64,000 nt of DNA from Dimorphilus gyrociliatus. Lineage: Eukaryota > Animalia > Annelida. Both the position numbers and the translations under genes were made by a program. The stretch is taken from contig CAJFCJ010000036.1 in NCBI GenBank assembly GCA_904063045.1, forward strand, positions 62,001 through 126,000, read 5' to 3'. Under the pieces are notes generated by a model. The model searched no databases. It was not told the origin of the DNA and was given only the letters and a program-made list of their open reading frames with translations. Positions 1 through 29,988 of this stretch are shown piece by piece (the stretch's first letter is position 1; every line of letters begins with the position of its first letter).

Positions 1-188
1 ATGGAGCTACTCTCCTCTCGTTTAACCTAATTTAATTCAAATACAACTTATCAACTTTTTGTTAGATACAATAGAAAATCATTTAAATTGATTTAATTCA
101 AAAATATTACTACTAGTTCTACTGCTGATGTATGTGAAAACATGATGGCAAACTATATGAATTTTTTGGTTTGTCATTTCAATTCCAA

Positions 189-434
189 TTACAGTAAGAA
201 AGATAGAATAATAATAACAATAAAAGTAAAACTGGAATTACAGGAATTGCCTGGAATGCTCCATTCACTGTATGTTTGTCTTGCAGAATAGAATGGGTTT
301 TTTTGTATAATTACAAGATTCCTCTCATCTGATTCAGATACCTTTTTGGGACAACCAGTTCTAGGTTTGTCTTCCATGGAAGAACATTCCATTGCCTTCT
401 TCAGGTTGTACCATACATACAGTACTATAGGCAA
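189..434 (-). mobile_element. Tc1/mariner transposase N-terminal (paired HTH) fragment
   Basis: ORF contains KPRTGCPKKVSESDERNLV..QKNPFYSARQ, matching the GRPKK..ER....NP..TA region of the intact Tc1 transposase at 35764-36762; truncated. Confidence 0.75.
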
Positions 435-1992
435 TTTGAAACTGCTTCGATATTTTTACATCGCTTAGCCCTCTTTTACTTAAGTCAACAATTTTCTCCC
501 TGATTTCAAGGCTTATCTTCACCATTTTATAACATTCTTCAAATTTTATGTTCTCTGATTGTGTAACACTTCTGAGTAAATGTCATAAAAAATTGTATTT
601 GGGTTTCTGTCTGATTATTATCTATTTTTTTGATAGAAACAGGGAACATAGCAGGAACTTACTATCCTTCATTTTGTTGAAAACTTTTAAGTAAAGATTA
701 CTGTGGAGTTAGAAAAATTTTGTAACAAGTTTTATCTATAAATTCGGTTGTATAAAGATCTTATCATTTAGTCTAAACAAAAAGATTTAATTAAGTATGT
801 CCTGTTAGTTAAATATTCACTTTTTCCAATCTAAGAACAACCTCTGTAAATAATGATTTCACTATATTTTCAAAAACAAAATAAAAACAAATTAGGAAAC
901 ATAATGAAAGGGAAATTGGTACATTTTCAAAATTTCATTGACCAATTAGTTTATATTCAAATAAATTTTTGTCTATAAAATTTCTTGTATTGTTTTATTG
1001 AAAATTGATGAAAAATCTATTGAGTTTGTAAACCAGAAATGTTTTCTAAAAAGCATTTTTGAGTAAGAGGAATTGCTTTGTTACTTCCTTTGTGTTTGGT
1101 AGTTAATGTTTATGAATTTTGAGTGAAAACTAAATCGAAGTTTTTGAATCAAACTTTGATTGAAAAGTCATTTTAGAGCTGTATTTTGCTTTAGATAGAG
1201 ATTGTATAAATTTCTGAGCAATATTTAGGCACTCTGAAGATCAATTCTAATGAAACATTCATTATTGATAGAGCTTTCATTGCAGCAGTTGGCATTGATA
1301 AAATTTTAAACGAATATTGTCTATCTGAACAATCTAGGAATGAACTGAAAATTACTAATACAATTTATAACAACTATACTGAAAAATGCACAGATATAGT
1401 GAAGAGAGGTCAGGACAGGTATTATACAGCTTAATTAGAGAACATGAAAGAAAAGAATCAAAATATGTACCTTGAAATGAGAAAAATTATTAAAAACTGG
1501 TACATTTTTTCTGAGTGAATGTGTAGTAAGTGTATAAATAAGGGGACGATTTAAATCCCTTATGGTTACGCTTTAACCCATGTACGGTTTCACCTGCTTC
1601 CTTCCCCCAACTGGATTGTAGTACTAATAACAATTTAAAAAAAATTTATTATAATACTAATATTTATTCATTTTCTGTCTAAAGCAGTTTTTTTTCTTAA
1701 GATGGTTCTAACTGGAAGTCCAAATGCAACAATATCAGTTTTTTCTTCTATATTAGTCTTTAATTTAATTGAAGTCAATTTTAAAAAGTATATTGCTGGT
1801 TCTGCACTTTTTTCTGTAACAGTAATGTGTTCTAAGTCAATATTTCCAGCTATTACAATTTTGAAAATATTAGAGTAAAAGTTTCAATAGACAGAACACT
1901 GTTTTGAAACACTAACCACAATCTATTTCATCTTTTCCATTATCACAGCCTTCTTTTAAATTGCATACATGCTGATAATATATTTGAGTATT

Positions 1993-2400
1993 TTAAGTAC
2001 AATTAAACATAAAATTCTCTGTACAATCAGCTTCATCAATAGAGTCTGTTCCTTGTTCAAAACCAAAATATTTACATAAAATATTTACTTCTCTACTCCT
2101 TAAATTGATGGGACACATTTTACGCCAAAAATTAAGATTATAAGCTTCTATATAGCCTTTTAATTCATTCAATTTCCAGAAGTGCCTCATGCTATGTACT
2201 TTGTTGTATTGTAATTGTAGGAATTTCTGCTTCTTCAGAACAATATTCGTCCTTTCCAATCATTTATCAATTTACCAAAGTACTGGTCCAATTAGAACCT
2301 TTCAAGTTCGTCCACAAATAGTCTTAACAAATGTAATTTCGGTAGAAATAATTCAACAAAATACCAGTATTTCGTCCAAAGAATATGTATTGAGTAAATG
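1993..2400 (-). pseudogene. Relic ectodomain exon(s) (SRCR-like) of the GRL101-like receptor family
   Basis: WRKMCPINLRSREVNILCKYFGFEQGT aligns with WLSIRSFSLKKREIDVVCRHFGFTSGT (gene A, 50172-50648) and YTLCPLYLRTKAVKLICQAMGFEDGT (gene B, 53848-54294); adjacent sequence has stops. Confidence 0.6.
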
Positions 2401-2735
2401 AGTTTCTAGTTCTAAACAAGTAAGTTTAAACAACCAGTTAATGGTTAAAGAACTGAACTGACAGGCTGGGGAAATGCATTTCCTTTTATACATTTCCAAA
2501 GCTTGGGTTCAAGTAGTCAAAGGATTACAAAGTTGAAATCTGATGGTCTCATAATTCTCATGTAACAAAAATATGAAAGACTGTTATATCACACATATAA
2601 AATATAATCCTAAGATTAGGACCACATGTCAAACATGTGCCGCAATAAACAGGCCTGCCTCATCAGCATCTGGTGTTCGACCTGCATCTTTCCCATGTTC
2701 TTTGTTCCTTTGTTAATTCCCAAGTAGCCACCATC

Positions 2736-2959: not shown

Positions 2960-5622
2960 GATATCCCACCCTTTTAAGACCTTGCTTCCACGAAAGGTCT
3001 GGGACTTGTCACAATGACTCTATTACCTTCTTTTGAAAATGTTGGATAGTTTTTAAGAGGTATTGCTTCTTGGTCAATTTCCATAGTTGAGTATGTTGGG
3101 ATCTGTAAATCTTTTTGTTGTATACTTGGAGCTGTTGGTTTGGCTTTCCTTCTTTCTAAGTATTTCCAAATTCTTTTCCTAGTAAGTTTGCTACATCTTT
3201 TTTTATATGCGAAGTTCCAATAATAATTATTGTTGGAAATGCAATATTAATCAGCATTTTGGTTGGAGTTTTTAGCCATGATGAAAATAAATGTTGATGT
3301 GTTGACATACTTGAGTCAATTCCTAATTCATTAGCAAAGTTGATATGTTTGTTATAAGTTGGTGGTTTTCTTGTGATAGTTTTATTAACCCTATCTCTGT
3401 ATTCCTTCTTTTTCAAAGCAGATTTGCAGAGTGCAGTAGCTCTGATTTCTTCCATTTCATGCTTTCTATCAAGTAGGAATTTTGTTGTTGGTTCTAATCT
3501 TGGGATTTCCATCAATAAATCTAAAATGTTTCTATTCTTTAATCCAAATAATATTTCATGTGGTGTTTTTTTTACCATTTCTGTAAAAATTTCCCCAAGG
3601 AAATTCCTTCCTTGATCTGTAAGAACTTCTTCTGGAATACCAAATATTGGAAAATAGTTGAAAAATAAATGTTTGGAAATTTCTTCAGCTGTTTGAGTTT
3701 TTAGAGGGAATAGATTGGTGAATCTTGACATGTGATCTATAATCACAAGTATATATTTGTAAGAATCATGTCCAGTCAAAGGTCCCATTATGTCCATAGC
3801 AATTCTTTGCATTGGTAGAGTTGGATGAGGTGTTTCAACCAACAAGTGTTTGTTGCCTGGTGCTCTTAATTGCTCACAAAATTCGCAATTCTTTATGTGG
3901 TCTTTAATTGTCTTCTTTAATTTTGAATGCCAGAAGGCTTGTTCTAAGGTATGAATTGTTATATCAACACTATAATGTTGAAATAGCTGATGTTGATGAA
4001 TTTGTCCAAGTAGGTTGGTTAAAGTTGATAGTGGTATTACAAGTAGTGGTTGACAACCATCTAAATACCATACCAGATCCTCTTTAACAAACATATTTTC
4101 AATGAAGTTTTTATATTCATACGATGTTCCAGTATCAATATTTTGTCCTTCCAATTTGTCTACAACTTTCATCAGTGGAGTATCCAAAAGTTGTTCTGTA
4201 TAGAAGTCTATTTTAACAGTTGTAGTTTTTAGTTTCATAACTTTCAATTGGTTTTCAATTGTTTCTTCATCATACTCATCATCTAAATTATCATCTAAGC
4301 AATCATCTAATTCTTCCAGATCTTCTGTATCAATATAAAAGCATTTAAGCATGTCTTTTCTTTCTGCTAGCTGAGGAACTGTATTGCCATTCTGTTTTTC
4401 TTGATTCAGTCTGTCTTTTAGTAAGTTGAGAAAATCAATTACTTCATCAGTTTCTCCAATTCTTGATACCCAGTCTGCAAACATATCTGCATCTTTTATC
4501 TTCTGAATCTTTTCTGGATCAGTTTCAATACCATTTTGTGTAATCTTATGACCAAGAAATTGTACTGATTCCTGTAAGAAAGCACACTTGCTTGGTTTGA
4601 TTCTGAAATCTTTTTCTTTAATTCTTTCTATTAGTTTTTGTAAAGCTATGTAGTGTTCTTCTAATGTTTTAGTAAACACAATAATGTCATCCATATAATT
4701 AATGCAAAAATTTTCTAATCCATTAATTACAAAATTTGTCATAATATAACTAAAGTGTAAAGGTGCATTTGCCAAACCAAAAGGCATTTGATTGAATTCA
4801 AACAGTCCAAATGGTGTAATAAAAGCAGTTTTTTCTTTGTCCTCTTCCTTGATGGGGATGTGGTGAAATGCACTTGTCAAATCTAATATGGAAAAGTATT
4901 TGTGGCCTCCTCCAAGCTTATCAAATAAATCTTCGCGGTGTTGGGATTGGATAGCAATTCTTTTTTGATTGCTTGTTAAGTTTTCTGTAATCCACAGACA
5001 TTCTCAATGTTCCTTCTTTCTTTTTAACAAAAACAATTGGTGAAGCCCATTGACTTTTACTTGATCTAATTAGTCCATTTTCCAATAAACCATTGAGTTG
5101 ATCCCTACATTCCTGTTGTTTATTGGGTGGTAATCTATAAGGCCTTTGTTTAAAAGGTTTTACATCTTCCAATAATTCAATTGCCATTGGTGGAACATCT
5201 GGTGAACCAATGTCATTCTGATTTGTAGCAATAATGTCTTCATAATTCTTTATCATTTCTTTTAATTCTTCTCTGTTCTTGTCAAGATTATTTTTGGACT
5301 CATGTAAATAATTGTCAGTTTCTAATGTATTTGAATTAATATTGTGTACATTTAGATTAGACAAATGTTTAAATTCAATACTTTCCAACTGTAATTCTTC
5401 TATTTCAGGAGTTACTGAATTTTTCTTTTGTTCTTTTTCCACTTTGATAGTTATTCCATCTTCTAATTCTATATATTGTGGTTTCACTTCCATTTCCATA
5501 GCCAAATCTTCAGATATAATTTCAGTTTCTTCTTCAGAAGAATTTACGAGAATAACAGAGTCATTGTCAGACTTAGGTGTGTTTTCACAGAAGACTTCTA
5601 TATCATTATATCTAAGTGCACA
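2960..5622 (-). mobile_element. Ty3/Gypsy LTR retrotransposon, internally deleted pol (RT, RNase H remnant, integrase)
   Basis: RT motifs PFKQRPYRLP, SQWASPIVFVKKK, VDYRKLN, FNQMPFGLANAP and YMDDII; integrase zinc finger (H..H...C..C) and core IAMDIMGPL, LTDQGRNF. RT jumps directly to ADWVSR (end of RNase H) and the integrase core is truncated; frameshift near 4900. Confidence 0.92.
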
Positions 5623-5699
5623 TGCTAAATAATTTTTTAAGTTATTTCTATAAATTAGGCTATATTTTTCTTCTAATTGACTTAATTTCAATGCAAAAA

Positions 5700-5990
5700 T
5701 ATCTTTAAAAAAATTACAATTATTAGAGAATTCTCTGCAAAAAAGCTTACAAGATGATTTCCCTTTAAAGCATTTTAAACAAAAATATCTTGCATTGTCA
5801 TAATGGAAATTTTATCTATCAAAACTGAAAAAACAGAATTATATATGCATTTTTAGTATTAAAGCTGTTTCAAATTGTCCCAATTCTAACACAGTTTCCT
5901 TCACTGAATACTTTGTTGCCCTGATTAACATTTTCTCTTACTGCAATTTTAATAATGCTTACAAATAACAACAATGTGTTTTTGAAGATT
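5700..5990 (-). pseudogene. Upstream relic of the GRL101-like receptor gene interrupted by the Gypsy element
   Basis: Minus strand 5790-5746 reads RYFCLKCFKGKSSCK, matching FCMKCYKKTSPC (gene A) and FCIKCFKSTNPC (gene B); surrounded by stops. Confidence 0.5.
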
Positions 5991-6076
5991 TTCTATAAAA
6001 ATGTCTATAACACCTGGAGAGGAAAAAGCTGTAATTGAAATCTAAAATTTGATGATACAAAACCGTTAGTTTTATG

Positions 6077-6262
6077 GGGGTCGACAGAAAATGTCCACAA
6101 ATGAGAAATTTCAAGACTAGATTTTGGATAAAGAAATGGTTTGGAAGAAGAAGATAGCAACTGATTTGTAGTTAGGAGGATCTCCTCTAAGGGTTAGGGG
6201 TAAGGGAAAAAGTTAGATACAGACAGAGGGCTGGGTTAGGGTTAGGGTAAAAGCACTGATTT
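6077..6262 (+). mobile_element. Truncated MITE copy (GGGGTCGACAGAAAA family, TTAGGG-containing)
   Basis: High identity to 15862-16068 from the left TIR to AAAGCACTGATTT; the right TIR is missing. Confidence 0.85.
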
Positions 6263-7249
6263 TATAATATGAATAGACAAATTCTTTCCATTATTCTGAC
6301 ATTCAGAGGCAACCATTAGTGGCGATTTGTAAAAAAATGTAAACAGTGATAGAATCACATATAATTTCATATTCTGTTACAGAGAGAAAAAAAATTGAGC
6401 GTATTTAAATATTAGAAAAATGTACTTTTTTAAAAAACAAAAGATGATTCTTGAAGAATTTTTTCTTTTCTAATAGTTTGTTATGTCTTTCAAATGTTCA
6501 CTAACTATTAGCTATTCATTAATTACTTTTAAATAATTTCCAGTTCAATGCAACAGTATCTATTTTTAAAAAAAAACTACAAGAAATTCTCAATTATTAT
6601 TGTCATTTTCTTACAATCTATTTCAACTTTATCACAAAAGAAAGTAATTTATTAGCATTTCGTCATTTGGGTGATAAGAGGCTGACATGTTTTATAGGTG
6701 AATTGAATATATCAGAGTTGACAGAAAATTTCAAGGCTAAATTTTGGATTGGAAATTATTTGGGAGAATTATCTCTAATTAACATTGTTGTTTAGGGAGA
6801 TCTCAATCAATTACAACCCAAGAAGGATCTTAGAGTGAATGCTTCTTATTTAGGATTACAGTTGGATTGATGATTTCCAATGGGGAATATTCTTTAATCT
6901 ATAGAAGGATCTCTTTACTTGTTGATGCAAAAAAAGATAAAATAAATTTTTTTGGCTTATTCAACTATTATGACATATCCATTCATCAATTATTAATGCA
7001 GCCATTTTGATTTTCACTATTATAGTCCTGAATATTTGAGAATAAAGAGACAAAACAAGACGAAGGAAAGATGATAGAGGGTGCTAAATAATAAAGATTT
7101 ATAGTAATAATCTTTTCTTTGCATAAAGGAATTGTACAAAAGATTGACTTGAAAACTTTTTATTTAAAAATCTTTGAATTTTTTAACGGTTTGCCGTAAA
7201 GATTAAGTTTTATCATAGATAAAAGATAGAGAGAAAGAGAGAAAGAGAG

Positions 7250-8522
7250 AAAGAGAAAGAAACCAACATGAATATTTTTCATTTCTGTTGCCGCCATTTT
7301 TGTTTAAATCAAAATCCATATAGGAAACAAAACGAGTAAATTTGATTTCCTCCACATTACATGTCATTTTAAATTTAATATTTTGTTTACCATTTAGGTT
7401 GTTGTCTTTGTTTCTTTCTAAATGATAAACCATTTCTACTTCCGGTGAAAATAGTCTTTTGACTTTATGCCTAGTTTTAAATATATCTCTCTCTTCGCTA
7501 ACTCTGAAAGAAGAAAGAAGGTAAAGCTGTTCACACTGTCCAACTAGTTTAATGTTACACTAACTGACAATCTCCACCATCTTCAGAGTTTATATGAAAA
7601 ATGAAAGAGTCGGGTTTAACAGAAATTCCTGATATTGTGACAATCGCTTTTTTTGAATCTGTAAAAATACAATAAAAGAATTTAAAGGATATTTAATAAT
7701 ATTTGAAAAAGTTCACTTTTATCGACAATTACAACTGGAAATTTCATCTTTTCTTCATGTTTGTCCAATTGGTCAATACATTTAACCGTAATATCTGTTG
7801 TCAAAGTTCCTTCAACATTTGCAGCATTAAATGATAGAGTTAAACTTTCTCGATTCAGAACTGTATGATTCCTTTTCATTGTTGAAATAAGGGATTTATC
7901 TTCCATGTGAACGCTGCACAAAGCAGAACCTCTGAATGCGTCAACAGATACTTTCAAAGGTCTATGATTAGCTGACATATCGGGATATACAAAACCAGGA
8001 AATGTAAAGGTTGATACTAGTGCTTCAGATTTTGTTACTAAAAAACAATCCAATGTATTTATGAGATGAGACTAAACTGTTTTTTATTACCATTATTATC
8101 ATCATCAATAACTTTAAAATTCTGTTCAACTGTTCCAATTACTGGGCATACCAATTTCATCTTGTATTCATGATCTCCAGAGAAAACATCGTCATTTTCC
8201 GCCTTTACTCTTAAACTAATCGTATTATCTGTATATCGAACTTCATGTGTGACTGAATTAGATTTTGGGCTAATAGAGACCTCCCTAAAATCCAATTTGG
8301 CTATTTATGAATATGAAAAATAGACATATAAAAGATAACTTACGTGCATTCAGAAGTTCTTTTCTTTTCCAAATAACAAGCGAGAATAGATAAACGTTCA
8401 TTTTCATACATTTCATCCAGAAATGTACAAAATGAATCATCATTTTTAATGACACTCACTTTGGCCGAAATGGAAGAGAAGTACAGAAAAAGTAGACAAA
8501 AATTTGTAAATTTCATCATCAA
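7250..8522 (-). CDS. Multi-exon secreted/surface protein with divergent cadherin-like beta-sandwich repeats
   Basis: Signal-peptide-like MMMKFTNFCLLFLYFSSISA, then exons ending in cadherin-like linkers (FKVIDDDNNG, VVIVDKSE, YMDFDLNKNG). Exon chain only partly resolved; the 3' end is uncertain. Confidence 0.45.
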
Positions 8523-10111: not shown

Positions 10112-12290
10112 ATGAATATTTTAATGTTTTATTTTATTTTAGATTCAATTACTCAGGTAATTTTGATGAATTTAGCAAGAGGAAAGTTATCTTTTCAGAG
10201 CTCTACACAAGGAAGTAATATTAATCCCAGTATACCTCAATTTGCTGTTGACAATAATATTAATATTTCATTAACCAATGCAAGTATTTAAATATATAAA
10301 AACTGGTTCGAAAAAATATATAAAATTGATTTTATTAGCCTGAACACTGTTCAAGTACTGACAATGATAATCTGGCGGCCTCTTGGTGGTCTGTTGATCT
10401 TGAAAATGAATATAGAATTACTGAAGTATGTCTTTTGAATATAGATCATAGCCGTTGTAAGTAAAGCTATCAAAGAAAATAAATTGGGACACCATACTTA
10501 ATTTTTATCTTGAAATTATTTTAGCTGTTGATTTAAAAGAATTCTATATTTTAATTGGCAACTATCCAAATGATAATAAAACTATATGCAATTATGTGTC
10601 TAGTCCAGTAAAGAGGCCAATTTCAACTGATATTTCACAGTATGATTGCTATTCCTGCAATGAGGGATCCATTGGTTCATTTCTGACTATTCAGTTAACA
10701 ACAATCAATAAAAAGTTAATATTATGCGACGTAGATGTTCATGGAAGTTTAATTAATGTTAATAGAGGTGTAAAGGCGAATTTTTAATCAAGTTTTAAAA
10801 CTTTGAATAATAAATTTGTGTTTTTTTTCTAAAAACATAATAAAAAGGTGTTGAATTATTAAATATGAGCAAAATTAAAACAACGACTGGCGGCCATCTT
10901 GGAAATGCAAAAAAAGAGAATGCGTATGATAATGATTATAAAACATTATTCCATTCAAGAAATGGTCTTTTAAAACCATATTTTTTAATTGATGCTATTC
11001 AAACATTTAAAGTACACAGAGTAATTATTGTTTCATTATACAATGATGGTTTGTTGTCAAATATTGACTTTTTGTTCCATTCCTATTTTTCGTTTTAACA
11101 GATTATCATAAAAGATTTCAAAGAGCTTTTATTTCCGTTAAACACATTCCGGAAACGGATTTAAATTTAAATAGTAAATTTTGCATTATGAATTTTTCTG
11201 GACAATTTCGAACAAGTTTTGAATTATTCAATATTGAATGTAATCCTATTCTTACTGGAAGGTATATAGTTGTCCATCACAATGTAAGTAAGATACCAAA
11301 CAAATTTTTAGAAATGATGGAAATATATGCCTATGTTTCAAAAATTTATGAAAATCAACCGGCAGGTTTGCACCTAATAAAAAGTTATTGAAAATATTTA
11401 GGAAATTTCAATACAAGAATCGTTTTTTTTTTAAAATAGAAATTGGACATAATTTTAAATCATACATTACTGAGGCAAAATTGAATAATGTTGTACTACC
11501 AAGTAATCAATTATCATTCTTAAAAGATGATATCTATTTTATTAATGATCATATTGGAAAGATAAATTTAAAAAATGATGATATTCTTAAGATAACTACA
11601 AATCTTATTCATCTAAATTATATTTGTTTAAGAGGTTAATAAGTTTACTTTTTTTTGAAATTTACAGTTTCTTTTTTAAATTTAAATTTAAATTTTTTAT
11701 ATTTCAATAGTTTTTCAATCTGTAAATATAACACATGAATTTGAAATAGAAATAGCAAATTTTCTAAATAATTCAACAATTGAACAACAAATAACAAGAG
11801 ATTTCAAAAACTCTCATACAATTTGTGTAAAATTCAATTTCACGTTGACGAAACAAATACGAATTATATCTAAAAATAGCCAAGGATTAGGAGAAGTTGA
11901 TCTTATTGCAGTTTCAACTTTAACTCAGAAAAGTTAGTAGCAAAAAAGATATTCTTCAATTTTTTTGTTTTTTTGTTTTTTACAGATTTGCCTGTTTGCT
12001 TTCAAACAATTGATAAATGGGCCTATTCTGTTTCTTTATTACAACAGAACTCTCAATTATATATCTATATTCTATTGGAAATTGTTGATAGAAATGAAGA
12101 AATTATTGTTTATCATTTGAAAACAGCTACTTATAACAAATTTTTAAGTTTATGCTCAAAAGTACAAATTCAAGATAACAGTTGGATGTTAAGAAATTAT
12201 CAACTATTTCTTTGTAAAAAGCTTGATGGCTCTATTGTAATTACTTCCTACCAGTTAAGGAAAATTGTAACAGCTTTACATATTTTTTAA
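10112..12290 (+). CDS. Secreted tandem F-type lectin (fucolectin/FTP, discoidin-fold) domain protein
   Basis: NLARGKLSFQSST..AVDNN, HCSSTDND..SWWSVDLENEYRITEV.LLN, GSFLTIQL..LILCDVDVHG; second domain AYDNDYKTLFHS..PYFLID..GRYIVVH..LEMMEIYAY; short GT-AG introns. The 3' exons (11388-12290) are less certain. Confidence 0.75.
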
Positions 12291-13003
12291 GCTATGTTTA
12301 CTGTTATTATTATTCAACAATAGATAAAAATTGCAATAGAGTGTTTGTGTTAATTAAATATTTATCAGGCCTAGGTTATTCTTAAAATAAAATCTTTCTC
12401 CATAAGCAACTTACCCATATCAATTCTTAATTTTCTTTAAATCTTTGCTTAAAACACTTGAAGAGAGCGATAATGGCAATTTGTCTGATGTAATATATAC
12501 ATCTTGTAATTTGTTGTTTTGTCTTTTATAAATTACTGTAATTTTAATTAATTCAATTAATAATGAATTAAAATGAGTTCTTTTATTCATGTAGCAGAAT
12601 CTTTGTGGTATAGCTGGAAAGGCAAAAGTAATATCTATATATTGATCAGTACAATTATGAAGTGCGCATGATGATGACCGCTCATTATTGAAAGTTCTAT
12701 CCAGAGCATTTTCACAGCCAAAATCATCCTTTGCAGTAGACGATGTACAATTTGCTCAGAAAAATATTTATGAGCATATCAATCAATTGCTACTATGACG
12801 GGGTCAAAAGAGAACGTCCTTAAAGGTTAGATGGTCAAAAGAGTATAAAAATATTACAGTTAACTCTACAAACACTAAATAACGTAAATAGCCACCAATA
12901 TTCATTATATATGATTAATACAGCCTGTAGAAAAATTCTTGCATGAATATAAAATAAGACAACAAAAAGTTGGTTGCTAAGGAAAGTTTATTAATAGGTT
13001 CAT

Positions 13004-15155
13004 TCAGAATTTACATTCTCGAAAAAATAATACAAAAATAATAGAAATAGCAATTAATTGAAATTTATAGGTAGTTTTTCCAACTCCTGTCTTGCCATCC
13101 AATTCCCAAGCATTGCATTTGTCTCCTTTACAGCATTTTACGCACTCTGTCTTTCCATCTGCAGTCTTACAATTTTCATTTATTGTTTCTGAAGTGCAAG
13201 TTTCATTTGAACAGCCTCTGGCATATTATAATTTATTTGAGGTTTCAATTCTATATGCCCAACAATCTCCAATGGAATAACTAGTAATTCTCATTTTATC
13301 TGTATTATTGTTGGTACTGGAAATTTCATCTCCACAATCAGTTTGATTTCCTTTACATTCATAGCATTTTTCTAAAGAAATTGTACAACATATTATAATA
13401 AGAATAGATATGATATAGACTAATACTACTTACGAGCACATTCCCTATTATAATTCATCAAGTGGAAATCAGTTTTACATTCAGTGCAAATACGTCCATT
13501 AATGCACATGGAGCATTTAGTTATTGAACATGCTATGCACTCTTCTCCATCATCGCTTAAAGAATAACCAGCAGTACATGAATTGCAAACAGTCTTTCTA
13601 TTCAATTGGATCATAGAAATAACCAGAATTACATTGTTGATCATCACATTTAGCAATTCCATTAACACTACATTTTTTACAATTTGGATCACATCCTGTA
13701 AATATTTAAACACTCAAAAAAGGTGAAGTCATTAACACAATACTTACTTTCACAGAAACCAGGATTAGTGGATTTGTTTATTCTGTAACCAATTTTACAT
13801 ATTTGTGGTATAAGTACATTGGATGAAGGTGTTTGATATGAATATCTTGCTACTCCATCTCCAGGGCAAGGCAGACAAGTTCCCTCAGTTCTGTGTCTAA
13901 TGAAGCATTCTTTGCAACCATCAGATATACAATATTGATCATTTAAACAAACAGGACAGTTTGCAACACATGCAAGACAGTTTCCACTGTTATCTTTATA
14001 ATAACCTCGATTGCATTTCAAACATTTGAATATTCCTATAATTTGTTGTACACATATTTCACAATTGGCAATAGAACAGGAATCACAGCTGAAATCAGAA
14101 TCTTTCAAAGCCCCTGAACTGCATCCCAAAGAGAGGCATATAGCATTATTTTGATTTTCAGGATCAACTCTGCATTCACCACAATTGTATGGACATTGTA
14201 TACATGTTCCAGCATTATTAAGAGCATACCTTGATGAACATTCAGTGCACTTATTAACTGTGGATGGTGATGAAGTTACATCAAGAGTACATGATTTACA
14301 TCCAGTCTGGCATTGATGACATTTTGATGCTGATGAGGGGGAAGCAGGCTCAAGAGCCCAACCAGAATTGCATTCTATACATTCTGAAGCAGTTGTTGAC
14401 CCAGTTGGGCTATTGTATTCTTTACAATTAGCAATGGCTTCACCCCCACCATTTGTATTAATTATGCACTGTGTTTTTCCCTGTGGCTGATAATTAGCTA
14501 AACATTCTGAACATGTACAAACATCATTGACCAACTTGAAAATTTTACAGTTTGGAATTTGATCTAAAGAACAAATAACACAGCCATTTGAATTAGAGTT
14601 CAATAAGGTGTTATTTGAACATGTGCATTCACATTCATTTCCTGAATTCAATACTGCTGTTCCACCAGTACATGTTATTTCATTTTGACAATTAATACAT
14701 TGAATATAGCTTGTCCGTTCATAAGGAGGTAAACATTCTACACAGAGACAGCCACCATCAAAGAACTCAAAGGTTTTACATTCTGGAATTTGAGCTAAAG
14801 AACAATCAAGACAGCCATTTGAATTAGGGTTCAATACATCCTTATTTAAACATGTGCATTCACATATATCTCCTTCAGAATTTAGTTTATGTATTCCATT
14901 GTCACATTGTCCACAAGAAAGGCACGATTGACCATCTTTAGAAACTATTTTACCATTACTGCATTCCTTACATACTGAAATATATTCTCCTTCTGCTAAT
15001 TTTAGTGTGTATTCATTACAATCTGGTATATCTGTAATTTCCATACATCCTACAGTAACCGGATGTTTGAGGTAATGTTTACCTAAACTATCAGGACTGC
15101 ATCTCCCACATATACATACTCCATTGAATTCAACAGCAAATGAACAATGTGACAT
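13004..15155 (-). pseudogene. CXXC-rich (furin-like/VSP-like repeat) surface protein with C-terminal Ly6/uPAR-like domain and hydrophobic tail; disrupted
   Basis: 488-aa Cys-rich ORF with an internal ~80-aa duplication (CECTC..LN.NSNGC..CSL.QIP.CK.F). The last exon reads KCYEC...ARGC...CVKCCKGDKCN plus LIAISIIFVLFF. In-frame TAA at 13226-13228 and a stop/frameshift near 13600. The 5' end was not found. Confidence 0.75.
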
Positions 15156-21508: not shown

Positions 21509-22907
21509 TAAAGTAAATGACAGGAATATTGGAACACCTCAAATTTTTATATTGCAAATATTAAAAATCTTTTTCATTATGAAAAAAGATTATTTTTTTT
21601 ATTTATTCAGCATTTAAAAATAGGTTAAATTTGCAATTTTATATAAATTTCTTTAAAACAGCAGTTACATAAGTTTTTACATATTTTTTTAAATAGAGAT
21701 TACAATAGTTTTCTGATTTTTTATTTCTTATTTGGCCTCGCAACATGTTTTTTGGAACAATGTTAAATTGTTGAATTTTTTGTCTATTTCTGTATGTGCC
21801 CACCCTCTCTTTCTATGCATTTGCTTATTCTACAGCCCATTCCCTCACATAAACTTGGCAACAAGAGTAGATTTCTGTTGATAACCTCATAGCAGCACTT
21901 CTTAATCTTTCCCCACAGTTCATCCTCTGGCTCGAACTGTGGGCCATTATAGACCATTGTCTTGGTCAGGTGTCACATGTTCTCAACTGGACTGAGATCA
22001 GGGCTCCTTGCTGGCCAATCAATGGGTTTGATGTTATTGTTTTTAAAGGCTCTTTTTGTTTTCTTTTGTAGTGTGACAGCCAGCATTGTCAGGCAGAACA
22101 TCTTCCACAATGAAGGAGCTATAGTTTTCTGCATTCAGCCTTCTCCTTATTCTCCAGACTTCAAATCACCATCAGAGGTTATCAACCCCCACACCAATAC
22201 TCCACCTCTCCCCATATTTTTCATCACCCTGAAGTCCTTTTCACTATTGCTGGTCCAAGTCCTAAAGTCATCAGGTCCACTTAGCGAAAACCTAGTCTCA
22301 TCAGTAAAAATAACCCTAGACCAGTCCAAATTTTTGCTAATAAATTTGAGGCAGTATTCTTTTCTCCATTTACAATCTGTGGAGGTGAGATCAAATCTTT
22401 GTCTGACTCTTTTGTATTTGAAATTTTGTCTTTTCAGCTCCCTCTAAATTGTTCTGATGCTTACATCTACTTCTAATTCCTTTAATATCTTTGCTGCTGT
22501 CACTCTTTGCTTGTTATCTTTCAGTTTCTTCACAATCCATTTCATCCTGGCTATCGCTCTGTTGGAAAGCTTCTTTGAACCACCCCTATTGTCTTGTTCT
22601 GGTTGCTTATATTTCAAGATGTTACTAACTGTTAATGGTGCCATTCCTAAAACTCTTGCTGTTGCCCTTAATTGCGGCCAAATAAAGAAAAAACTTATGA
22701 AAATTATTAAAAATTTTTGCTAATAATGTTCACAAAATATTATCATTTTCTTCAATTTTTTTCAATAATATTTAACTCAATTTAACTCTTTTTCTATATA
22801 AATTTAGACAAAAATACTAATTTGCAGCGGACAAACAATTTTAACTGTTAATTAAAAGTTGGCCTATCAAAATTTATGGTGTCCATATACTCCTGTCGTC
22901 CACTTTA
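21509..22907 (-). mobile_element. Degenerate Tc1/Tc3-like DNA transposon
   Basis: Transposase remnants VIFTDETRFSLSGPD, GGVLVWGLI, DNAGCH, WPARSPDLSPVEN with stops and frameshifts; imperfect ~30-bp TIRs (TAAAGT..ACAGGA.TAT..ACACC) each flanked by TA. Confidence 0.85.
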
Positions 22908-23442
22908 TATAATAGTTTATCTTAACTGAAATGTCAACTGAAATGGACATTTCCAATGATATCAATGTATATGGTTATCTTGTCAAAAATATACTTCAGA
23001 AGTGAAATGCAACATTTGTAAACGAAAATATCGGTTGTAAATTGGCCTATGCATTTAGTAAATACTCTTCCATGTTGACATTTTAAGACAATTAAGCAAG
23101 CCATATTATTTATAATACATTTATTTGTAAATTTTTCATTTGATTAGTTGAGAAAAAATATTTCAAAAAGAGAAATCTCTTTAAACCGGAAGTCGGATAA
23201 GTCGGGTATTATAGTCAATAATTGGGGATAGACAAAAACTCAATACGCCTTTGTTGAGCACTGATAGAGAAGATAGTAGGAACTTGAACATAGCTGGATA
23301 GTTGAATTTCATCCTTTATTCATAATTCAAATTTATACTTTAAACTAAACAACTCAAGACTTATTGATTATTCGGGTCACACTCCAAGGTATTTCTTGTA
23401 TTGTTTGTGAGGATTTAATGTCAAAGCAGCAAAATGAGTGTT

Positions 23443-26400
23443 TTAGGCTTTAGGCACATCAAAGAAAAAGAATTTACTCATAGAAAAGGACGTTTCGGGA
23501 ATTTGCCTATAATCATTATAACCATATGTTGCAATTTTCATGTTCATTAGCATATAGACTCTCGCCATAATGTCTGTTAAAGATTGTTTGTGAGAATATA
23601 CTCTCATGCAGATAATAAAGCAGCGTATAAAAAGACTTCCATGAGGTAAACGTTCACTGATTTTGCCTAATTGAATTGAATACTCATAAGAAGGTTAATT
23701 ACAAACTGAACAAAATTAATACCTTCTATTGTTGAATAAATTTTAATACAATCTGACATTTCCAAACTTTTTGATTTTCCTGTCAGTTTATTAATAACTT
23801 TACTTAGTAAATTTCCATCTGTGTCTTTGGTAGAACAGTCACTTTTGTTCAAAGGCTTGTCTCCTATTTGAAAAGTGATAAAACAATGTTTAGTAGATGG
23901 AGAAAACGTCCACAAACAGTCAACTTTGGGCCTAGGTTAGGGTATTTCTAAGGTCAGGGAAATCTTAAATTTATTTGTTTCATTACTATGTTAGAGATGG
24001 GATAAAAACGCAAACTGTGGACATTTTCTCTAAAATTTTCTATCTAAAATATTTTTAACTAATTGTCACTTAATCTAAAATAACATTAAAATATATTTAA
24101 AAATATTTACCTCTGCAACAATTGAAAAAGAACACTTTAGGTTTTGAAAATAAACTTGGGCAATTAACATCATCGAAATAGAGCATTAAATCTTTGAAAC
24201 TAGAAAGACGTTTGCCACGTACTGTAATTAAAAACATAATTAAAAACACAAGAAATCACACCAATGAAAAGGAATATTTTTACAATCAAATCCATCTTTG
24301 TCACCATGAGCCATGATAAAGAAAATTAAACAATCAAATTCCGCCATTTTAGACTGCAAATTTATTATTGCCGTCTTAAAATCACTCTCCGTTGGGTCTT
24401 GCAATATTTCTACGTCGTAATTAAGAGTTTCAAACATGTTTGATAAATTTTCTACATCGTATTCACTTCCTTCTCTACCTGCAAAAAAAAGACTTTTTTA
24501 GACTGGTATCCTAACTTACCCTTTCAACTTACCTTCTGAATCATTAAAAATGACAACTTTTACAGTTTGAAACTCATAGTAAAGTTTCTGTGGAAAAAGA
24601 AAGAGAAAGCTTTAAAAAATATTATTGAGTTGTGTTATAAAAACCTTATGACCAAGTCTTTCATGATATGCTTTGTCATTACTAAAATTTCTTGTGTGTA
24701 GATCAAAAGGAATTTTCTTTTCGCTTTCTTTGTTTATTAAATCGAAAATAAATATAAATAAAAAACGTAATTTATAAATTATACCGTATTTGGTAAATTC
24801 TGTTAATAATAAATTATCCATAGTAATTAAATTAACTGGTAGGAAATAATAATTTTTAAAATCATTAGTTTGCAGTTGAAAATCTTCATTGTCTGATATA
24901 TTTTTCTGTTTTGACTGATATGTTATATCAGTTAATTCCATTATCTTTCGCAGTGGTTCGCAATAATTGCAGTATTTTATTGATAGTATTAAACCTTTTA
25001 CAAAAATACTTCCACTATTCTTTAGGTAATTGCAGTCCTCTGAAATTTGTAAAAAAAATTACAGAAAAGTGGATATTACTAAATTCAGGTCAGAATAAAA
25101 TTCACCAGAAATATTTGTAATTTTAACAAAAGTATTGGTTTTTCCTGATAAAAGTTGGCGTTCGATGTTTGTTCTTTCAACTTTAAAAATAAGAAGAAAA
25201 AAACCATAAAACTTAAAAATCTTTCACAAAATATGGTATTTTTTGATATTCATTAATTTTTTTATTACTTGAAATCGAAACATTCATTTCTTTATTTCCG
25301 GCTTGTTCCTGTGGCTTCTTACTCGAAATATGCACAAAGCCATCTGAGCCAGAGCGAGTAGCTAAAAGTATATACAATTAGAAAAAAAAGAACATAACAA
25401 TCTCTTTCAAAGTACAACCTTCACTTTTTGTATAAAATTGAAAAAAAAACATTTTGGGTTGCTCATCAAAATCATTAATATTTAATTTATTCATGATTTC
25501 ATTACATTTTTTAATATCTGAATTTCCACTTGACTGAATAAAAAATATTAAAGATTTTCTTTCTAAACATTGTTTTAAATTCTTTGTCATTTGTGCAGAA
25601 AGATCTTTTGTGAAATCTAAAGATTGAATTTCAAACTCTAAAAAATTAAAAAATCCTTTTAAATTCAAAAAATCTTTTTGAAAATTTGTTTGATCTTCAT
25701 CTAAAGATAAAAAGAAAACCACAGTTTCATTATAAGCACTATATGAATCCTGTGAAAGACAAATATATTATGTTTTGTAAAATAAATGAAAATATATTCA
25801 ACTTTATCATTCAAGCATTTCCGCATTTTCTCAAATTTCTTTTCACATTCAAAGTTTTCCTGGTGTTGAAGTTGTGGTTTATCTAAAAAGAAATATAATT
25901 TGCAGAAAAACTGAATATTAATTAGCTAATCTCCACTTATTTTGGTGTCTATTCTCACCATTTTCTGAATAATATCCCAAAATGCATTGTTTTGAAAATT
26001 TTTCTTTTGGCAGACTGAAAAAATTATCTTTGAACTGCCAATTTCTTGAAATAATTCCTTCTTTTGAATCTCCGCTTTCAATGATTATTATTCCCCCATC
26101 ATTTATATTTTCACGTTTTAGGTAAACCGCAAAAGAACATTTATTACCTAAATAAAATCAATGAATGATGGAATTAGGTCTATCAGAATTGTTTTTTTTT
26201 CTTTTTTTAAAAACCTAGCTTAAAACAATCAAATATTTCTTTGGAGTTTCTGGAAGAGACTTTTGAAAATCCCTCTCCTTTCACTGTTACCCGCAGATCA
26301 TTTGTAGATGACACCTCACTATTTAATTTTTGAAGTGTTATCTCATTCGTTTCCAAATGAACATTTGTAACTTCCTAAAATTAGAAAAGAGAATATATGT

Positions 26401-28904
26401 ATATAAATTTAGTGAAAACCGGTATACTAACTTCAGTCTTTAAACTAAAATGAATAGAAAATTTGACACAGCTAGGATCTGCTATTTCAATAGAACAAGA
26501 TACATTAAGCCTCATTCCATCATTGCTAATATTGGAAAAATCGTGTGGGGAAAAATGATTCAAATTTGCAACAATCAAATCAGACTTTAAATATTTAAAT
26601 TTGTTTGATTTTATATCTTTAGACTTAAAAATAGGATTCAAAAATAATTTTGCCATGATTTCTTCTTGTAATTTTCCATCCGGTTTACAATCAATAGAAC
26701 TTTTAAGTAGAATATAATCATTCTCTTCAATAAATGAATAATTTTCCTGGATGGAAACAACAGTTGATTTTTGATATGATTTTTTTGGAAAGATTATTAA
26801 TGAATTTTCAGCATTTAATTGCAATTCTTCACCAGTAAAAAGAGCTGTTGAAAATGAATTAATATCATTATTCAACCTATTTAACACTGGACAAGTATCA
26901 CAAATCAATTTCTTATTTTTAGTTTCCATTCGAATTTCTAAATTATCTATTTTTTCAATATAAAATTGCTTGTTGTAAATAATTCCCTTTGATAAATAAT
27001 TTATAGATGAGACTGTAAAATTCAAGTCTCCATTAATTCGAATCCGAATCCAAGTATCTTTCATTTGACTCAATTTGAAATCCTTCAAATAGACAAGATT
27101 TTTCAAAGAGTTTATACTATTCTTTTCGTGTCTGATTGATAAATTGCAACCCATAAAATTTTCTCCTACATATTCTGCTTGAATGCATAACAAAAGTGTC
27201 AACTCTCCTTTATCATTTTCTCCACTTTCAATTGGAAAGAGGTAATTGTTAAGAGTACCGTCGAGGAGAGGAACATAGTTTGATTGATGCTCAATTAAAA
27301 CACCGTTTTTCAGTAGTTCAACATGGTCTGTATTATAATCGAAAGCGGGTACAATAATCCAGCCAAAATGATTTGATATTTGTCTTGGAAAAATACAACT
27401 TTCAGTTTTTTTTATTGTAACAACTAACACAGATTCATCGAAAGAATCTAATTGAGTTGTATCTAGAATGAATCCAAAATCGTAGGCGGTTTTAAACTCT
27501 GTTTTTTTCGTTCTATCCTTTCCATCTAACCATAGAATAATTCTGATACTGTCCTCGTTCCAGAACATGAATGTATCATTCACCTTCCTTCTCAATTCAT
27601 CAATTAAACATTTGCATTTCCGACAACTACAACTTTCTATTTCCGCTTTTTTTTTAAATAAATATGCCGAAAGCTGCTTGGGATCTTTGTTTTGGAGAAC
27701 TTCAGATGTAGAAGAAACTTTTTTGGAAAGGAAAGATAAGAATATAATGATTTAGATATTTTGAATAGAATGACGTTTACTATCAGCGAATAGAAGAGAT
27801 ATTTCTCTTTTTGTTGAAAAGCAATAACAACTTAAAAAATTATTCATTGTATCCTTAACATTTTTCATAGCTGTAATTTTGAATGAAAGATTGAACGAAG
27901 GGATTGTATAAAAAAGAAATAACCTTTGCTCAGCTTATTTTCATAATTCATTGTAAAGACCTCTTTATTTGAATAGTTAAAATATTCAAAAGAAAGAGAA
28001 ATATTCTTTTTTGCTTCCACCATGTTTGTATTTTCGTATTCTTTTTCTAGCTTTTCAGGTGTTGCGTAAAATTTTGTATTTTCATTACCAGTAGTGTATA
28101 GTATCCTTAGAGAAGGAACTCTATCTTCATTAAACAGTTTTTTTGCAACTTCTTTTATCCATTCCTCTATAGAATAAATTCTAATTTAGAATAGAAATTC
28201 CCCTTCTTTGAATAAGAAATAAGTTAAGAACCTGGAGAAGATTCCACAAATGATATTGATTTTCTATCAGCTCCAATGCCAGGCATTTGGTGTGAAAATT
28301 TTAGAATCTCAAACTGCAATTTGAGATCATAATCTGCTTGTTGTGATAAAGAAAAGTTGAGGGAAAATTATTGACAAAGCGCTCACCTTCTTCATAATTT
28401 GGGATGATGAATAATTTTTGTTTATTTTGAAGTACATTACAATTATCCTCATTAATCTTCTTTTGAAATTCGTTAAATAACTTATATTCTGATTTCGAAC
28501 CTTCAAAGAGACGAAAGAGTAGATTGTCTAGTTAATAATATAATGAAAACCTTCTAGTGAGAGAGCAAAGAAGATAAATCGATCAACATTTTTTGAATTT
28601 CTCTTTAAATTTTCGACTTTTAATTCAAATTCTCTTGGACAGTCAATCATCCATTTTTCAGTAGAATCACACAGATTAGATAATCCTTGAATATTCAATT
28701 CCGTGCTATAGTCATTTTTATCTTTAAAGATAAGAAAAGATCGTGTAAACAATAGAATAATAGAAATTTAAGAAATAGCGCCCACTTATTAAAATGATAA
28801 GTTGAGTACGTTGAGAAAATCCCTAAAAGAGGAAAATTTGAATTATTTGGATAAAATTCCAAATTGATAAAGAAAGAATATACTTTAACTAATTCTTCAG
28901 CCAT
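23443..28904 (-). CDS. Multi-exon protein: pseudo-caspase 1, ZU5/UPA-like modules, pseudo-caspase 2, catalytic-type caspase domain
   Basis: Exons chain in frame through short GT-AG introns from MAEELVK (28904). Last domain: GREGSEYDVENL, FIMAHG, CPSLFSKPKVFFFNCCRG, YSTIEG..GSLFI, RQIPE..SKFFFF. Two upstream caspase-fold copies lack His/Cys. The long exon has a ZU5-like LIIFPKKS..LLKSSIDCKPDG..ANLNHFS and a UPA-like IRIRINGDL. Apparent 1-nt frameshifts near 28417 and ~23560. Confidence 0.78.
23897..24035. mobile_element. Short related MITE in a caspase intron
   Basis: Inverted repeats GAGAAAACGTCCACA / TGTGGACATTTTCTC around a TAGGTTAGGG core. Confidence 0.6.
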
Positions 28905-29988
28905 TGATATGCCTTGTACAGCACCTTTGCAGTAGGTAAATTTAGAAAAAACAAGAAATTTTATTTATATAAAATTCTTAACAAAGAACTCACCTGCTTC
29001 ACCTTGTTCGTATCTGCTTATTTTGAATATATTGTGGTCTTTATTTTCTTATATTGACTTGGAAAATCCACATTTTGCGATAAGGTTATAAGTCACGTGA
29101 TTCGTCAACAACCTTTGAAAAAGAATTGCATCTGTCGATAAGCTAAAATTTCATATAATGAGATAAACTTTTTCGTTTTGCTCCACTAAGAACAACAATA
29201 AAAGAATGAATAGTAATAGCGATAGCTCAAATTTGCGTTGATCTTATTCTAATTTCTATCACGTGTTTGTTTCGAATTTGACAGAAAATGGCCACAATAT
29301 TGAAATACTAAAGAAGTATTCAAAAGGTACGCTTGCCTGCTTCAAAAACATTTTTTTCTTAAAAAACATAGGCTTAACTCAGGACTATTTTAAATGAAGG
29401 GTTAAGATTAGCATTGTGTGTATCCAACCACAAAGGCCATATAGAGTCAAAGACAAAATTTTTGGTGTGTAGCATTGTTTTCTATATGAAAATATTGAAA
29501 ATTCAATACAGTTTCAAACAACTATGTAACTGTAAGCTATTTATTTCCTGTAGCATTGATATTCAAGCTAAGAATGTTGAAGACAACTGATTAAAGTTCA
29601 CTTTTATTATTCTCGAATGAAAACAAAACTAGGGAAAAAGATAAATAAAACATTTCTCTCTCTCCGAGAGATGGTGTGTAATAGCTATATATTGTCATTA
29701 GTGTATTAATGACACAACATTTAAAATTTTGCTGATTCTGCTTCATTAAACCAATCAATCGGGATTAGTACAAACTAAGCCTAGAGAGGTGAAGGGTCGT
29801 TAATGACCATAACAAAATGTATATACAGTATTTCGCAGAAAATGCTAATTATTTTCACAAATTGGTGTGTATGCTTAATTATAGCTGCAATTATTATAAT
29901 AATTATCTCGTCATGAGGAATGGAATCCATATATATATAGAGAGAGTATCCTGATAATATCCTCCTCCCTTCTTTTCTTTATTCAATT

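Follow-up and report, generated by a model that had tools for sequence, protein, structure and literature searches.

A spliced gene of the annelid Dimorphilus gyrociliatus encoding a ZU5-UPA-ZU5 module with a candidate autoproteolytic site upstream of a pseudo-caspase and a caspase

Self-cleaving switches built from ZU5 and UPA domains, such as PIDD1, NLRP1, and CARD8, are to our knowledge known to cooperate with caspases only via death-fold adaptors. Regulation of a live caspase by a dead caspase fold is represented by the heterodimer of cFLIP and caspase-8. Here, we describe a gene of the annelid Dimorphilus gyrociliatus located on the minus strand at 28904..23443 of a 64,000-nt stretch of DNA (assembly GCA_904063045.1, contig CAJFCJ010000036.1, positions 62,001 to 126,000 of the forward strand; hereafter the window), which has a base composition of ~29% G+C. 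The encoded chain consists of pseudo-caspase 1, a linker, a ZU5, a UPA, a second ZU5 ending in His-Phe-Ser (HFS), a UPA-sized region, pseudo-caspase 2, and a caspase, and the core of this architecture is conserved. Taken together, we consider it moderately probable that the product would be a cytosolic multidomain caspase with a self-cleaving ZU5, release of a fragment, and regulation by a pseudo-caspase in cis.

Cleavage of PIDD1 takes place at HF/S and that of NLRP1 and CARD8 at SF/S; in these three proteins, neither the Phe nor the nucleophile can be dispensed with, while the triplet's first residue has little influence, and acyl shifts of this kind can make use of Ser, Thr, or Cys (PMC3210808). 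An inactive and an active caspase domain in one chain were described for caspase-X of the coral Acropora, for which deletion of the pseudo-domain raised cell killing and which was modelled as an internal pair resembling cFLIP and caspase-8; one A. digitifera prediction has four caspase domains (PMC4715348). The premise of an earlier note on this DNA, according to which a pseudo-caspase and a caspase are always separate proteins, therefore had to be given up, and its idea that inactive folds could act as dimerisation partners or regulators in cis is reasonable, yet not new in view of this precedent. Like caspase-X, the annelid protein is a single polypeptide in which an active-type caspase comes after a caspase-like domain lacking the catalytic His and Cys, whereas caspase-X has neither a ZU5/UPA module nor a third caspase-like region upstream; the annelid family and coral caspase-X are likely of independent origin. 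A survey of lophotrochozoan caspases including D. gyrociliatus reported several unusual prodomains, ZU5 not being among them (bioRxiv 10.1101/2023.12.11.571055), and in a limited literature search no paper on a fusion of ZU5, UPA, or FIIND with a caspase was found. What is newer is thus that a ZU5-UPA module bearing a conserved HF[S/C] lies directly upstream of tandem caspases.

With the NLRP1 and CARD8 FIIND, the annelid protein shares a ZU5 ending in x-Phe-Ser, followed by a UPA-sized region and then by the death effector part, and also a variable N-terminus with leucine-rich repeats (LRRs) in an annelid paralogue; it differs by a directly fused caspase in place of a CARD or PYD and by an extra ZU5-UPA in front. 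Common to PIDD1 are the HFS directly after a ZU5, more than one ZU5, an LRR-bearing family member, and caspase activation as the presumed output. However, PIDD1 recruits caspase-2 through its death domain and RAIDD, while the annelid caspase resides in the same chain, and the order ZU5-UPA-ZU5 contrasts with ZU5-ZU5-UPA in PIDD1 (LRR-ZU5-ZU5-UPA-DD). As in the pair of cFLIP and caspase-8, the inactive annelid fold might regulate its live neighbor, but cFLIP exists as a protein of its own and carries two DEDs, for which there is no room in the annelid protein because pseudo-caspase 1 begins at residue 8. No CARD or Death match was obtained for any gene piece or for the public protein DgyrCDS14409 (P0001), caspase-like domains holding that position, and no NACHT or LRR match for the pieces of this gene, LRRs being present only in the related proteins P0002 and P0008. 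Because a match to a C-terminal death-fold adaptor is missing, we place the protein outside the families of NLRP1, CARD8, and PIDD1, with a putative likeness to them in its way of working.

The gene model was joined by hand from short open reading frame (ORF) pieces of the minus strand via canonical GT..AG introns. Thereby, 21 exons with a single open frame over 20 introns were obtained. Nineteen of the introns measure 50-88 nt, and the remaining one measures 247 nt; the final coding sequence comprises 4,056 nt and the product 1,351 amino acids. On the minus strand, coding exons 1-7 are located at 28904-28884, 28822-28786, 28721-28551, 28500-28387, 28333-28232, 28166-27924, and 27870-27781, exons 8-14 at 27717-26432, 26374-26215, 26147-25959, 25882-25803, 25749-25419, 25361-25269, and 25180-25106, and exons 15-21 at 25039-24785, 24727-24645, 24587-24533, 24478-24284, 24221-24111, 23863-23723, and 23666-23443, all based on the in-frame model and on contigs of the public sequencing run X1 (2017). 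Within the spliced leader, an in-frame stop lies ahead of the start codon ATG at 28904, and the stop codon is 23445-23443 (minus strand). The 5′-untranslated region (UTR) covers 28905..29200 on the minus strand, extends past 29200, and contains an intron at 28993-28925, as obtained from depth arithmetic on one contig and from translation of the leader.

Of the words sampled from the stretch, 62% are present in run X1; its library type is not recorded, and its contigs were treated as RNA-derived because they are spliced. Among the contigs placed on 23300-29200, all 15 listed joints correspond to introns of the model, including the exon-13 donor 25269, and for the other six joints, arithmetic on the depth of contig 2 gave exact positions. 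For this contig (590.1), the binned depth reproduced the modelled exon coverage to the base in eight of eight bins, and since the depth fits only in this way, the start of exon 5 was set to 28333 and the 5′-UTR intron to 28993-28925. All 20 coding introns are thus matched by spliced contigs, and the joining of the exons in frame into one polypeptide, as proposed before, was borne out. The exon-5 acceptor is a NAGNAG pair (28333/28336), of which the RNA contig uses the downstream AG at 28333, a correction by 3 nt that makes the protein one Ala shorter than with 28336. The candidate acceptor 28336 and a splice variant "a" of exon 13 with donor 25323 were rejected, both being unused in the RNA contigs; use of 28336 in other transcripts may be conceivable. 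In the only long intron (23864-24110; 247 nt), a 14-nt imperfect inverted repeat, GAGAAAATGTCCAC... / ...GTGGACGTTTTCTC, with a distance of ~120 nt was seen by eye; it may represent a small insertion, and it was not among the repeats detected by the repeat tool at seed 8.

Contig 1 (2,963 nt) begins in the 3′-UTR, includes the caspase and pseudo-caspase 2, and reaches exon 8, and contig 2 (2,143 nt) extends from exon 8 over pseudo-caspase 1 as far as the 5′-UTR. They share 30 nt inside exon 8, and because of this overlap a spliced contig crosses each of the boundaries between domains. The long frame could be an artefact, either of neighboring genes merged by assembly or read-through or of a decaying copy without function, and it may be held in favor of such a view that no single record of run X1 covers the whole mRNA, that the two contigs overlap by 30 nt only, and that the public annotation has a different, shorter protein. 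Against this, the introns separating the modules (50-88 nt) are too short to contain both a terminator and a promoter, no stop interrupts the frame over 20 introns and 1,351 codons, the overlap lies inside one exon and not at a domain boundary, and the annotated model skips transcribed exons and enters a transposase fragment, which puts the fault on the annotation; we therefore judge an artefact to be highly improbable. This is one expressed gene with all modules in one open frame.

The public model itself was identified by an exhaustive protein search with exon 8, which was 100% identical to DgyrCDS14409 (859 amino acids) of D. gyrociliatus. This model begins at a Met inside exon 8, leaves out the pseudo-caspase 2 exons, and finishes with a transposase fragment; it is in conflict with the RNA contigs and is mis-built. 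Broken pieces of a Tc1/mariner-type transposase lie directly downstream of the gene at 21973-22644 (minus strand), and it is these that DgyrCDS14409 erroneously joins to the caspase. In its tail, P0001 shares 73% identity with part of DgyrCDS14671, a protein with a DDE_3 transposase domain. The three transposase ORF pieces at 21973-22644 alone gave no Pfam match. The search for homologous proteins matched only P0001, the transposase relative P0015, and three fish caspases, a full-length product of the gene was absent from the protein collection searched, and the ESM Atlas, queried by features and shape, returned only unrelated clusters with low scores.

The catalytic-type caspase is encoded by exons 17-21 (23443..24587, minus strand). 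Residues 522-735 of P0001, which are identical to the product of these exons, match Pfam Peptidase_C14 with E 2.8e-32, and caspase exon pieces do so individually with E 8e-6 and 1e-5. The catalytic His is encoded at 24308-24306 (AHG) and the Cys at 24117-24115 (NCCRG), and in the alignment both residues are kept in this last domain only, having been lost in both upstream regions. At the positions of the Asp-specific S1 pocket, which in caspases are Arg, Gln, and Arg, the alignment places Arg (in "GREGSEYD"), Asn, and Arg (in "KISERLPHGS"). Judged by its sequence, the C-terminal domain is a true Peptidase_C14 of the active type, in agreement with the assignment in the earlier note, whose quoted motifs (LSLEG, PNYEE, IQSSG, FQFYT, AHG, and NCCRG) were all found in the frames given for the ORF pieces of the minus strand, within the strings FFALSLEG, FIIPNYEE, FFIQSSGNS, FFFQFYTKSE, FIMAHGD, and FFFNCCRG.

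Pseudo-caspase 2 consists of a p20-like half in exon 12 (25419..25749, minus strand), which has IQSSG in place of xHG and FQFYT in place of QACRG, and of a p10-like half with the linker to the caspase in exons 13-16 (24645..25361, minus strand), assigned by profile alignment and kept in relatives. Exon 12 alone gave neither a Pfam match nor a match to PDB sequences, exon and ORF pieces of both pseudo-caspases had no Pfam caspase match, and single exons of either pseudo-caspase had no match in the search of PDB sequences. With profiles, however, the relationship became visible: the profile of the pseudo-caspase 2 family aligned to the caspase profile over 107 columns in hhalign (P 2e-9, probability 96%), with IQSSG on AHG and FQFY on FNCC, and to the active domains of the family alone with P 2.9e-11. 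Searched against all PDB sequences, a profile made from pseudo-caspase 2 only returned caspases for 59 of 60 among the matches listed (E ~0.05-0.2, in register), with caspase-3 chains ranking first. The exons behind the p20-like half align, as a family profile, to the "GSxFIR" helix of the caspase p10 (P 4.8e-5). Compared with three near-identical fish caspases alone, the two pseudo-caspases gave weak values (P 0.008 and 0.03); the link to caspases runs via the active domains of the family itself.

The model of exon 12 built with AlphaFold2 (AF2) has a predicted local distance difference test score (pLDDT) of 75 and a predicted template modelling score (pTM) of 0.67, with an order of beta and alpha elements (beta-alpha-beta) as in the caspase large subunit. 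In Foldseek, the best 18 PDB matches to this model are large subunits of caspase-2, -1, and -4 (probability 0.97-1.00; template modelling score 0.51-0.61). The sequence statistics of pseudo-caspase 2 are independent of the alignment used for folding. By profile comparison, pseudo-caspase 2 is a caspase homologue, and its p20-like half models, with true caspases present in the folding alignment, as the fold of a large subunit. Together with the caspase it is located on one spliced contig, and the tandem is repeated in five genes of a relative (L001, L004, L006, and L007; see below).

The middle region was analyzed with an AF2 model of exon 8 comprising 428 residues, based on nine homologues (mean pLDDT 69, pTM 0.69), which is all-beta and has three domains. 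It was compared by VIA-align with 48,161 representative PDB chains in a fold search not reliant on Foldseek, and the five best matches were ankyrin-B, UNC5b, CARD8, the NLRP1 FIIND, and the ZU5 of ZO-1, with Z 8.4-9.1; ankyrin ZU5A-ZU5B, the human NLRP1 UPA, and ZU5-ANK follow lower in the list. The first ZU5-like domain (exon-8 residues ~47-150; 27266..27577, minus strand) was assigned from the matches to the CARD8 FIIND (model residues 46-281; Z 8.9, 203 residues aligned) and to the cytoplasmic ZU5-UPA of UNC5b (residues 59-279; Z 9.0), and Foldseek also gave Unc-5 and CARD8. The UPA-like beta-sandwich behind it (residues ~160-283; 26867..27238, minus strand) is matched by the UPA of ankyrin-B (residues 171-283; Z 9.1), by the C-terminal chain of the rat NLRP1 FIIND (residues 140-282; Z 8.8), and by the human NLRP1 UPA (Z 7.2). 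For the second ZU5 (residues 284-389; 26549..26866, minus strand), the ZU5 of ZO-1 was found (residues 284-388; Z 8.4, Foldseek probability 1.00), ankyrin ZU5 domains matched with Z 6.5-7.7, and homologues of it exceed the Pfam ZU5 cut-off of 21, namely P0011 and P0014 with 26.2 bits and P0008:440-560 with 21.8 bits. In Foldseek with the whole 428-residue model, sliding-clamp noise dominates, and only the match to the ZO-1 ZU5 is meaningful. The exon-8 family profile had no match among PDB sequences, and in profile comparison the two ZU5 domains did not prove to be repeats of each other in sequence. According to the model, the domain order is ZU5, UPA, ZU5, and the presence of ZU5/UPA-like modules in this region, as supposed earlier, is thereby supported. 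In the helical low-confidence linker preceding the first ZU5, a Cys-rich stretch, CSCRKCKC, was noticed (27620-27660, ~residues 288-297), with a comparable "CEKCH" in P0007.

The second ZU5 terminates in Asn-His-Phe-Ser-Pro, and the triplet His-Phe-Ser (residues 647-649; 26549..26557, minus strand) is a candidate autoproteolytic site on the basis of its conservation in homologues. All ten homologues have this Phe, directly followed by Ser or Cys, exactly at the end of the second ZU5; the Phe forms one of nine invariant columns among these ten sequences, which share ~20-30% identity. HFS is followed by a region of 157 amino acids encoded by the tail of exon 8 and exons 9-10 (25959..26548, minus strand), which is UPA-like in position and size only; its part inside the exon-8 model has a low pLDDT and is truncated there. 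In the mechanism we propose, the second ZU5 would cut its own chain between Phe and Ser, as in PIDD1, NLRP1, and CARD8, and the halves would stay bound to each other. Loss or disturbance of the variable N-terminal half, comprising pseudo-caspase 1 and ZU5-UPA-ZU5, would then free the C-terminal fragment, which would self-associate and activate its own caspase without a CARD or death-domain adaptor. Pseudo-caspase 2 would be a cFLIP-like partner in cis that restrains or shapes the neighboring caspase, as in coral caspase-X.

Several points weigh against this mechanism. Many proteins with ZU5 and UPA, e.g. UNC5 and the ankyrins, do not cleave. The sequence of exon 8 itself has no Pfam ZU5 or UPA match, and because of this the ZU5 identity rests on the fold matches and the homologues; the fold matches with Z 8.4-9.1, obtained with a model of mean pLDDT 69, stand modestly above generic beta-sandwiches (Z 5-8). 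At the His position of HFS, four of the ten homologues have another residue (Gly in two, Gln in one, and Ser in one), and the region behind HFS showed no sequence similarity to the first UPA-like domain in profile comparison. Concerning the caspase part, the alignment used to fold exon 12 held true caspases, which biases its model towards a caspase-like fold, the substrate specificity of the caspase is uncertain with NCCRG instead of QACRG in the active site, and no p10-like half was detected in the ~110 residues following pseudo-caspase 1 when compared with small-subunit profiles (P 0.14).

Some of these points would equally be expected if ZU5-UPA-ZU5 served, without cleaving, as a scaffold or for binding in the manner of UNC5, the ankyrins, and ZO-1, with HFS having a structural role and the protein being a caspase-X-like tandem with an unusually large prodomain that docks to a partner. 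The best fold matches include the non-cleaving UNC5b, ankyrin-B, and ZO-1, a Phe-Ser type motif is missing at the junction of the first ZU5 and the UPA, and the lacking Pfam ZU5 match of the window's own sequence and the His that is not kept in four of ten homologues fit as well. A purely structural role is harder to bring in line with an invariant Phe followed by Ser or Cys in ten of ten homologues at the very end of the ZU5 despite ~20-30% identity, a pattern that equals that of PIDD1 (HF/S) and of NLRP1 and CARD8 (SF/S), in which the first residue of the triplet is dispensable. We therefore consider a scaffold unlikely, though deserving attention, and retain self-cleavage at the second ZU5 as the reading to be preferred.

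How many caspase folds the chain has is a question separate from that of cleavage or scaffolding. The p20-like half of pseudo-caspase 1 is encoded by exons 2-4 (~residues 8-114; 28387..28822, minus strand) and has LSLEG in place of xHG and PNYEE in place of QACRG; behind it lies the region of exons 5-6 (27924..28333, minus strand), which the earlier note regarded as p10-like and which is weakly similar to the N-terminal exon of one relative. Residues 8-114 aligned to the caspase profile over 106 columns with the motifs in register (hhalign P 2.8e-5); LIILIN occupies the first strand, FFALSLEG is placed against FFIMAHG, and KQKLFIIPNYEE against KPKVFFFNCCRG. The hidden Markov model score was 21.0 bits compared with a maximum of 8.6 bits in 2,000 shuffles, and the hhalign score 40.6 compared with a maximum of 24.4 in 100 shuffles. 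At the level of profiles, the similarity of pseudo-caspase 1 to caspases is thus significant over the p20-like half only.

The chain might accordingly have two caspase folds only, pseudo-caspase 1 being a decayed remnant of a large subunit and at most a variable sensor or bait. Only its p20-like half is detectable, the search for a p10-like half gave nothing (P 0.14), none of the relatives examined has a caspase-like region upstream of the ZU5 module, and paralogues have LRRs in place of pseudo-caspase 1. On the other side, the similarity extends over the entire half-domain and keeps every landmark motif in register, the next 110 residues have, as read from the sequence, the length and hydrophobic pattern of a small subunit, and the region is expressed and in frame across five exons. 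We regard a remnant as a possibility to be taken seriously, albeit as the less probable case. Of the triple caspase fold claimed before, the caspase and pseudo-caspase 2 (P 2e-9 and model) stood, whereas for pseudo-caspase 1 this holds for the p20-like half only, the p10-like half being undetected; a triple fold is not yet demonstrated, and what is at hand are two firm domains and one half-supported domain.

Related genes were found in the same genome and in a relative. The paralogue DgyrCDS14372 (P0002, 1,962 amino acids) of D. gyrociliatus contains the ZU5-UPA-ZU5 module (E 6e-22), has GFS at the position of the HFS motif, and carries ~1,100 residues of LRR-type repeats where the DgyrCDS14409 gene has pseudo-caspase 1; P0008 likewise has LRR-like repeats upstream of the module. 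The pseudo-caspase of P0002 (ADG / QVHNQ, without His and Cys) passes Pfam C14 with E 3e-7. Residues 1560-1600 and 1905-1962 of P0002 are hydrophobic low-complexity stretches resembling translated introns, and the protein ends abruptly after the pseudo-caspase, before any active caspase; part of the protein is probably missing from the annotated model, and an active caspase may be hidden further downstream. Further members are located on genomic contigs L001-L008 of an AT-rich relative (SRA runs SRR23372216, SRR23372228, SRR23372229, and SRR23372231). In L001 (two genes), L004, L006, and L007, the ZU5 module is followed by a pseudo-caspase without His and Cys, a small-subunit-like exon, and a caspase of the active type with CHG or SHG plus NNCRS, whereas L005 and L008 have the ZU5 module and one caspase. 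The p10-like half and linker of pseudo-caspase 2 are conserved in the relatives. No caspase-like region was found upstream of the ZU5 module in any relative examined, and to judge from these comparisons, pseudo-caspase 1 may be particular to this D. gyrociliatus gene.

If a ZU5-UPA switch is indeed fused to a pseudo-caspase/caspase pair, release by loss of the N-terminal part could run without adaptors, and sensor, switch, and executioner may share one molecule. Such a protein would offer a compact system for studying UPA-driven clustering and the control of caspase firing by a dead partner in cis. Also, the genes add an annelid family with interchangeable N-terminal modules (LRRs or a pseudo-caspase) to the ways in which invertebrate proteins of innate immunity and cell death are assembled, and caspase surveys of annelids built on models like DgyrCDS14409 would miss this architecture. 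Going further, one may picture a single-chain "inflammasome", in which the variable N-terminal half, here a dead caspase as bait for pathogen proteases or caspase inhibitors and in paralogues the LRRs, would restrain a self-cleaved C-terminal fragment, and destruction of the bait would fire an adaptor-free oligomer of UPA, pseudo-caspase, and caspase. We hold this to be a speculative and rather improbable extension; if true, an adaptor-free and effector-fused version of the functional degradation mechanism of NLRP1 and CARD8 would have arisen in a small annelid lineage.

Finally, some observations on the gene neighborhoods of the relative can be added. On the 14.5-kb contig L001, two family members are arranged in tandem (4325-8400 and 10257-14480), which points to local gene duplication in the relative. 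On L004, a gene for an 851-amino-acid protein with Death and TIR domains (157-2712, minus strand) lies head-to-head with the gene for ZU5 module, pseudo-caspase, and caspase. On L008, two ORFs with BIR domains (IAP-like; 4514-5065 and 7915-8460) are located a few kb downstream of the gene with the ZU5 module plus caspase, a possible caspase/inhibitor neighborhood.

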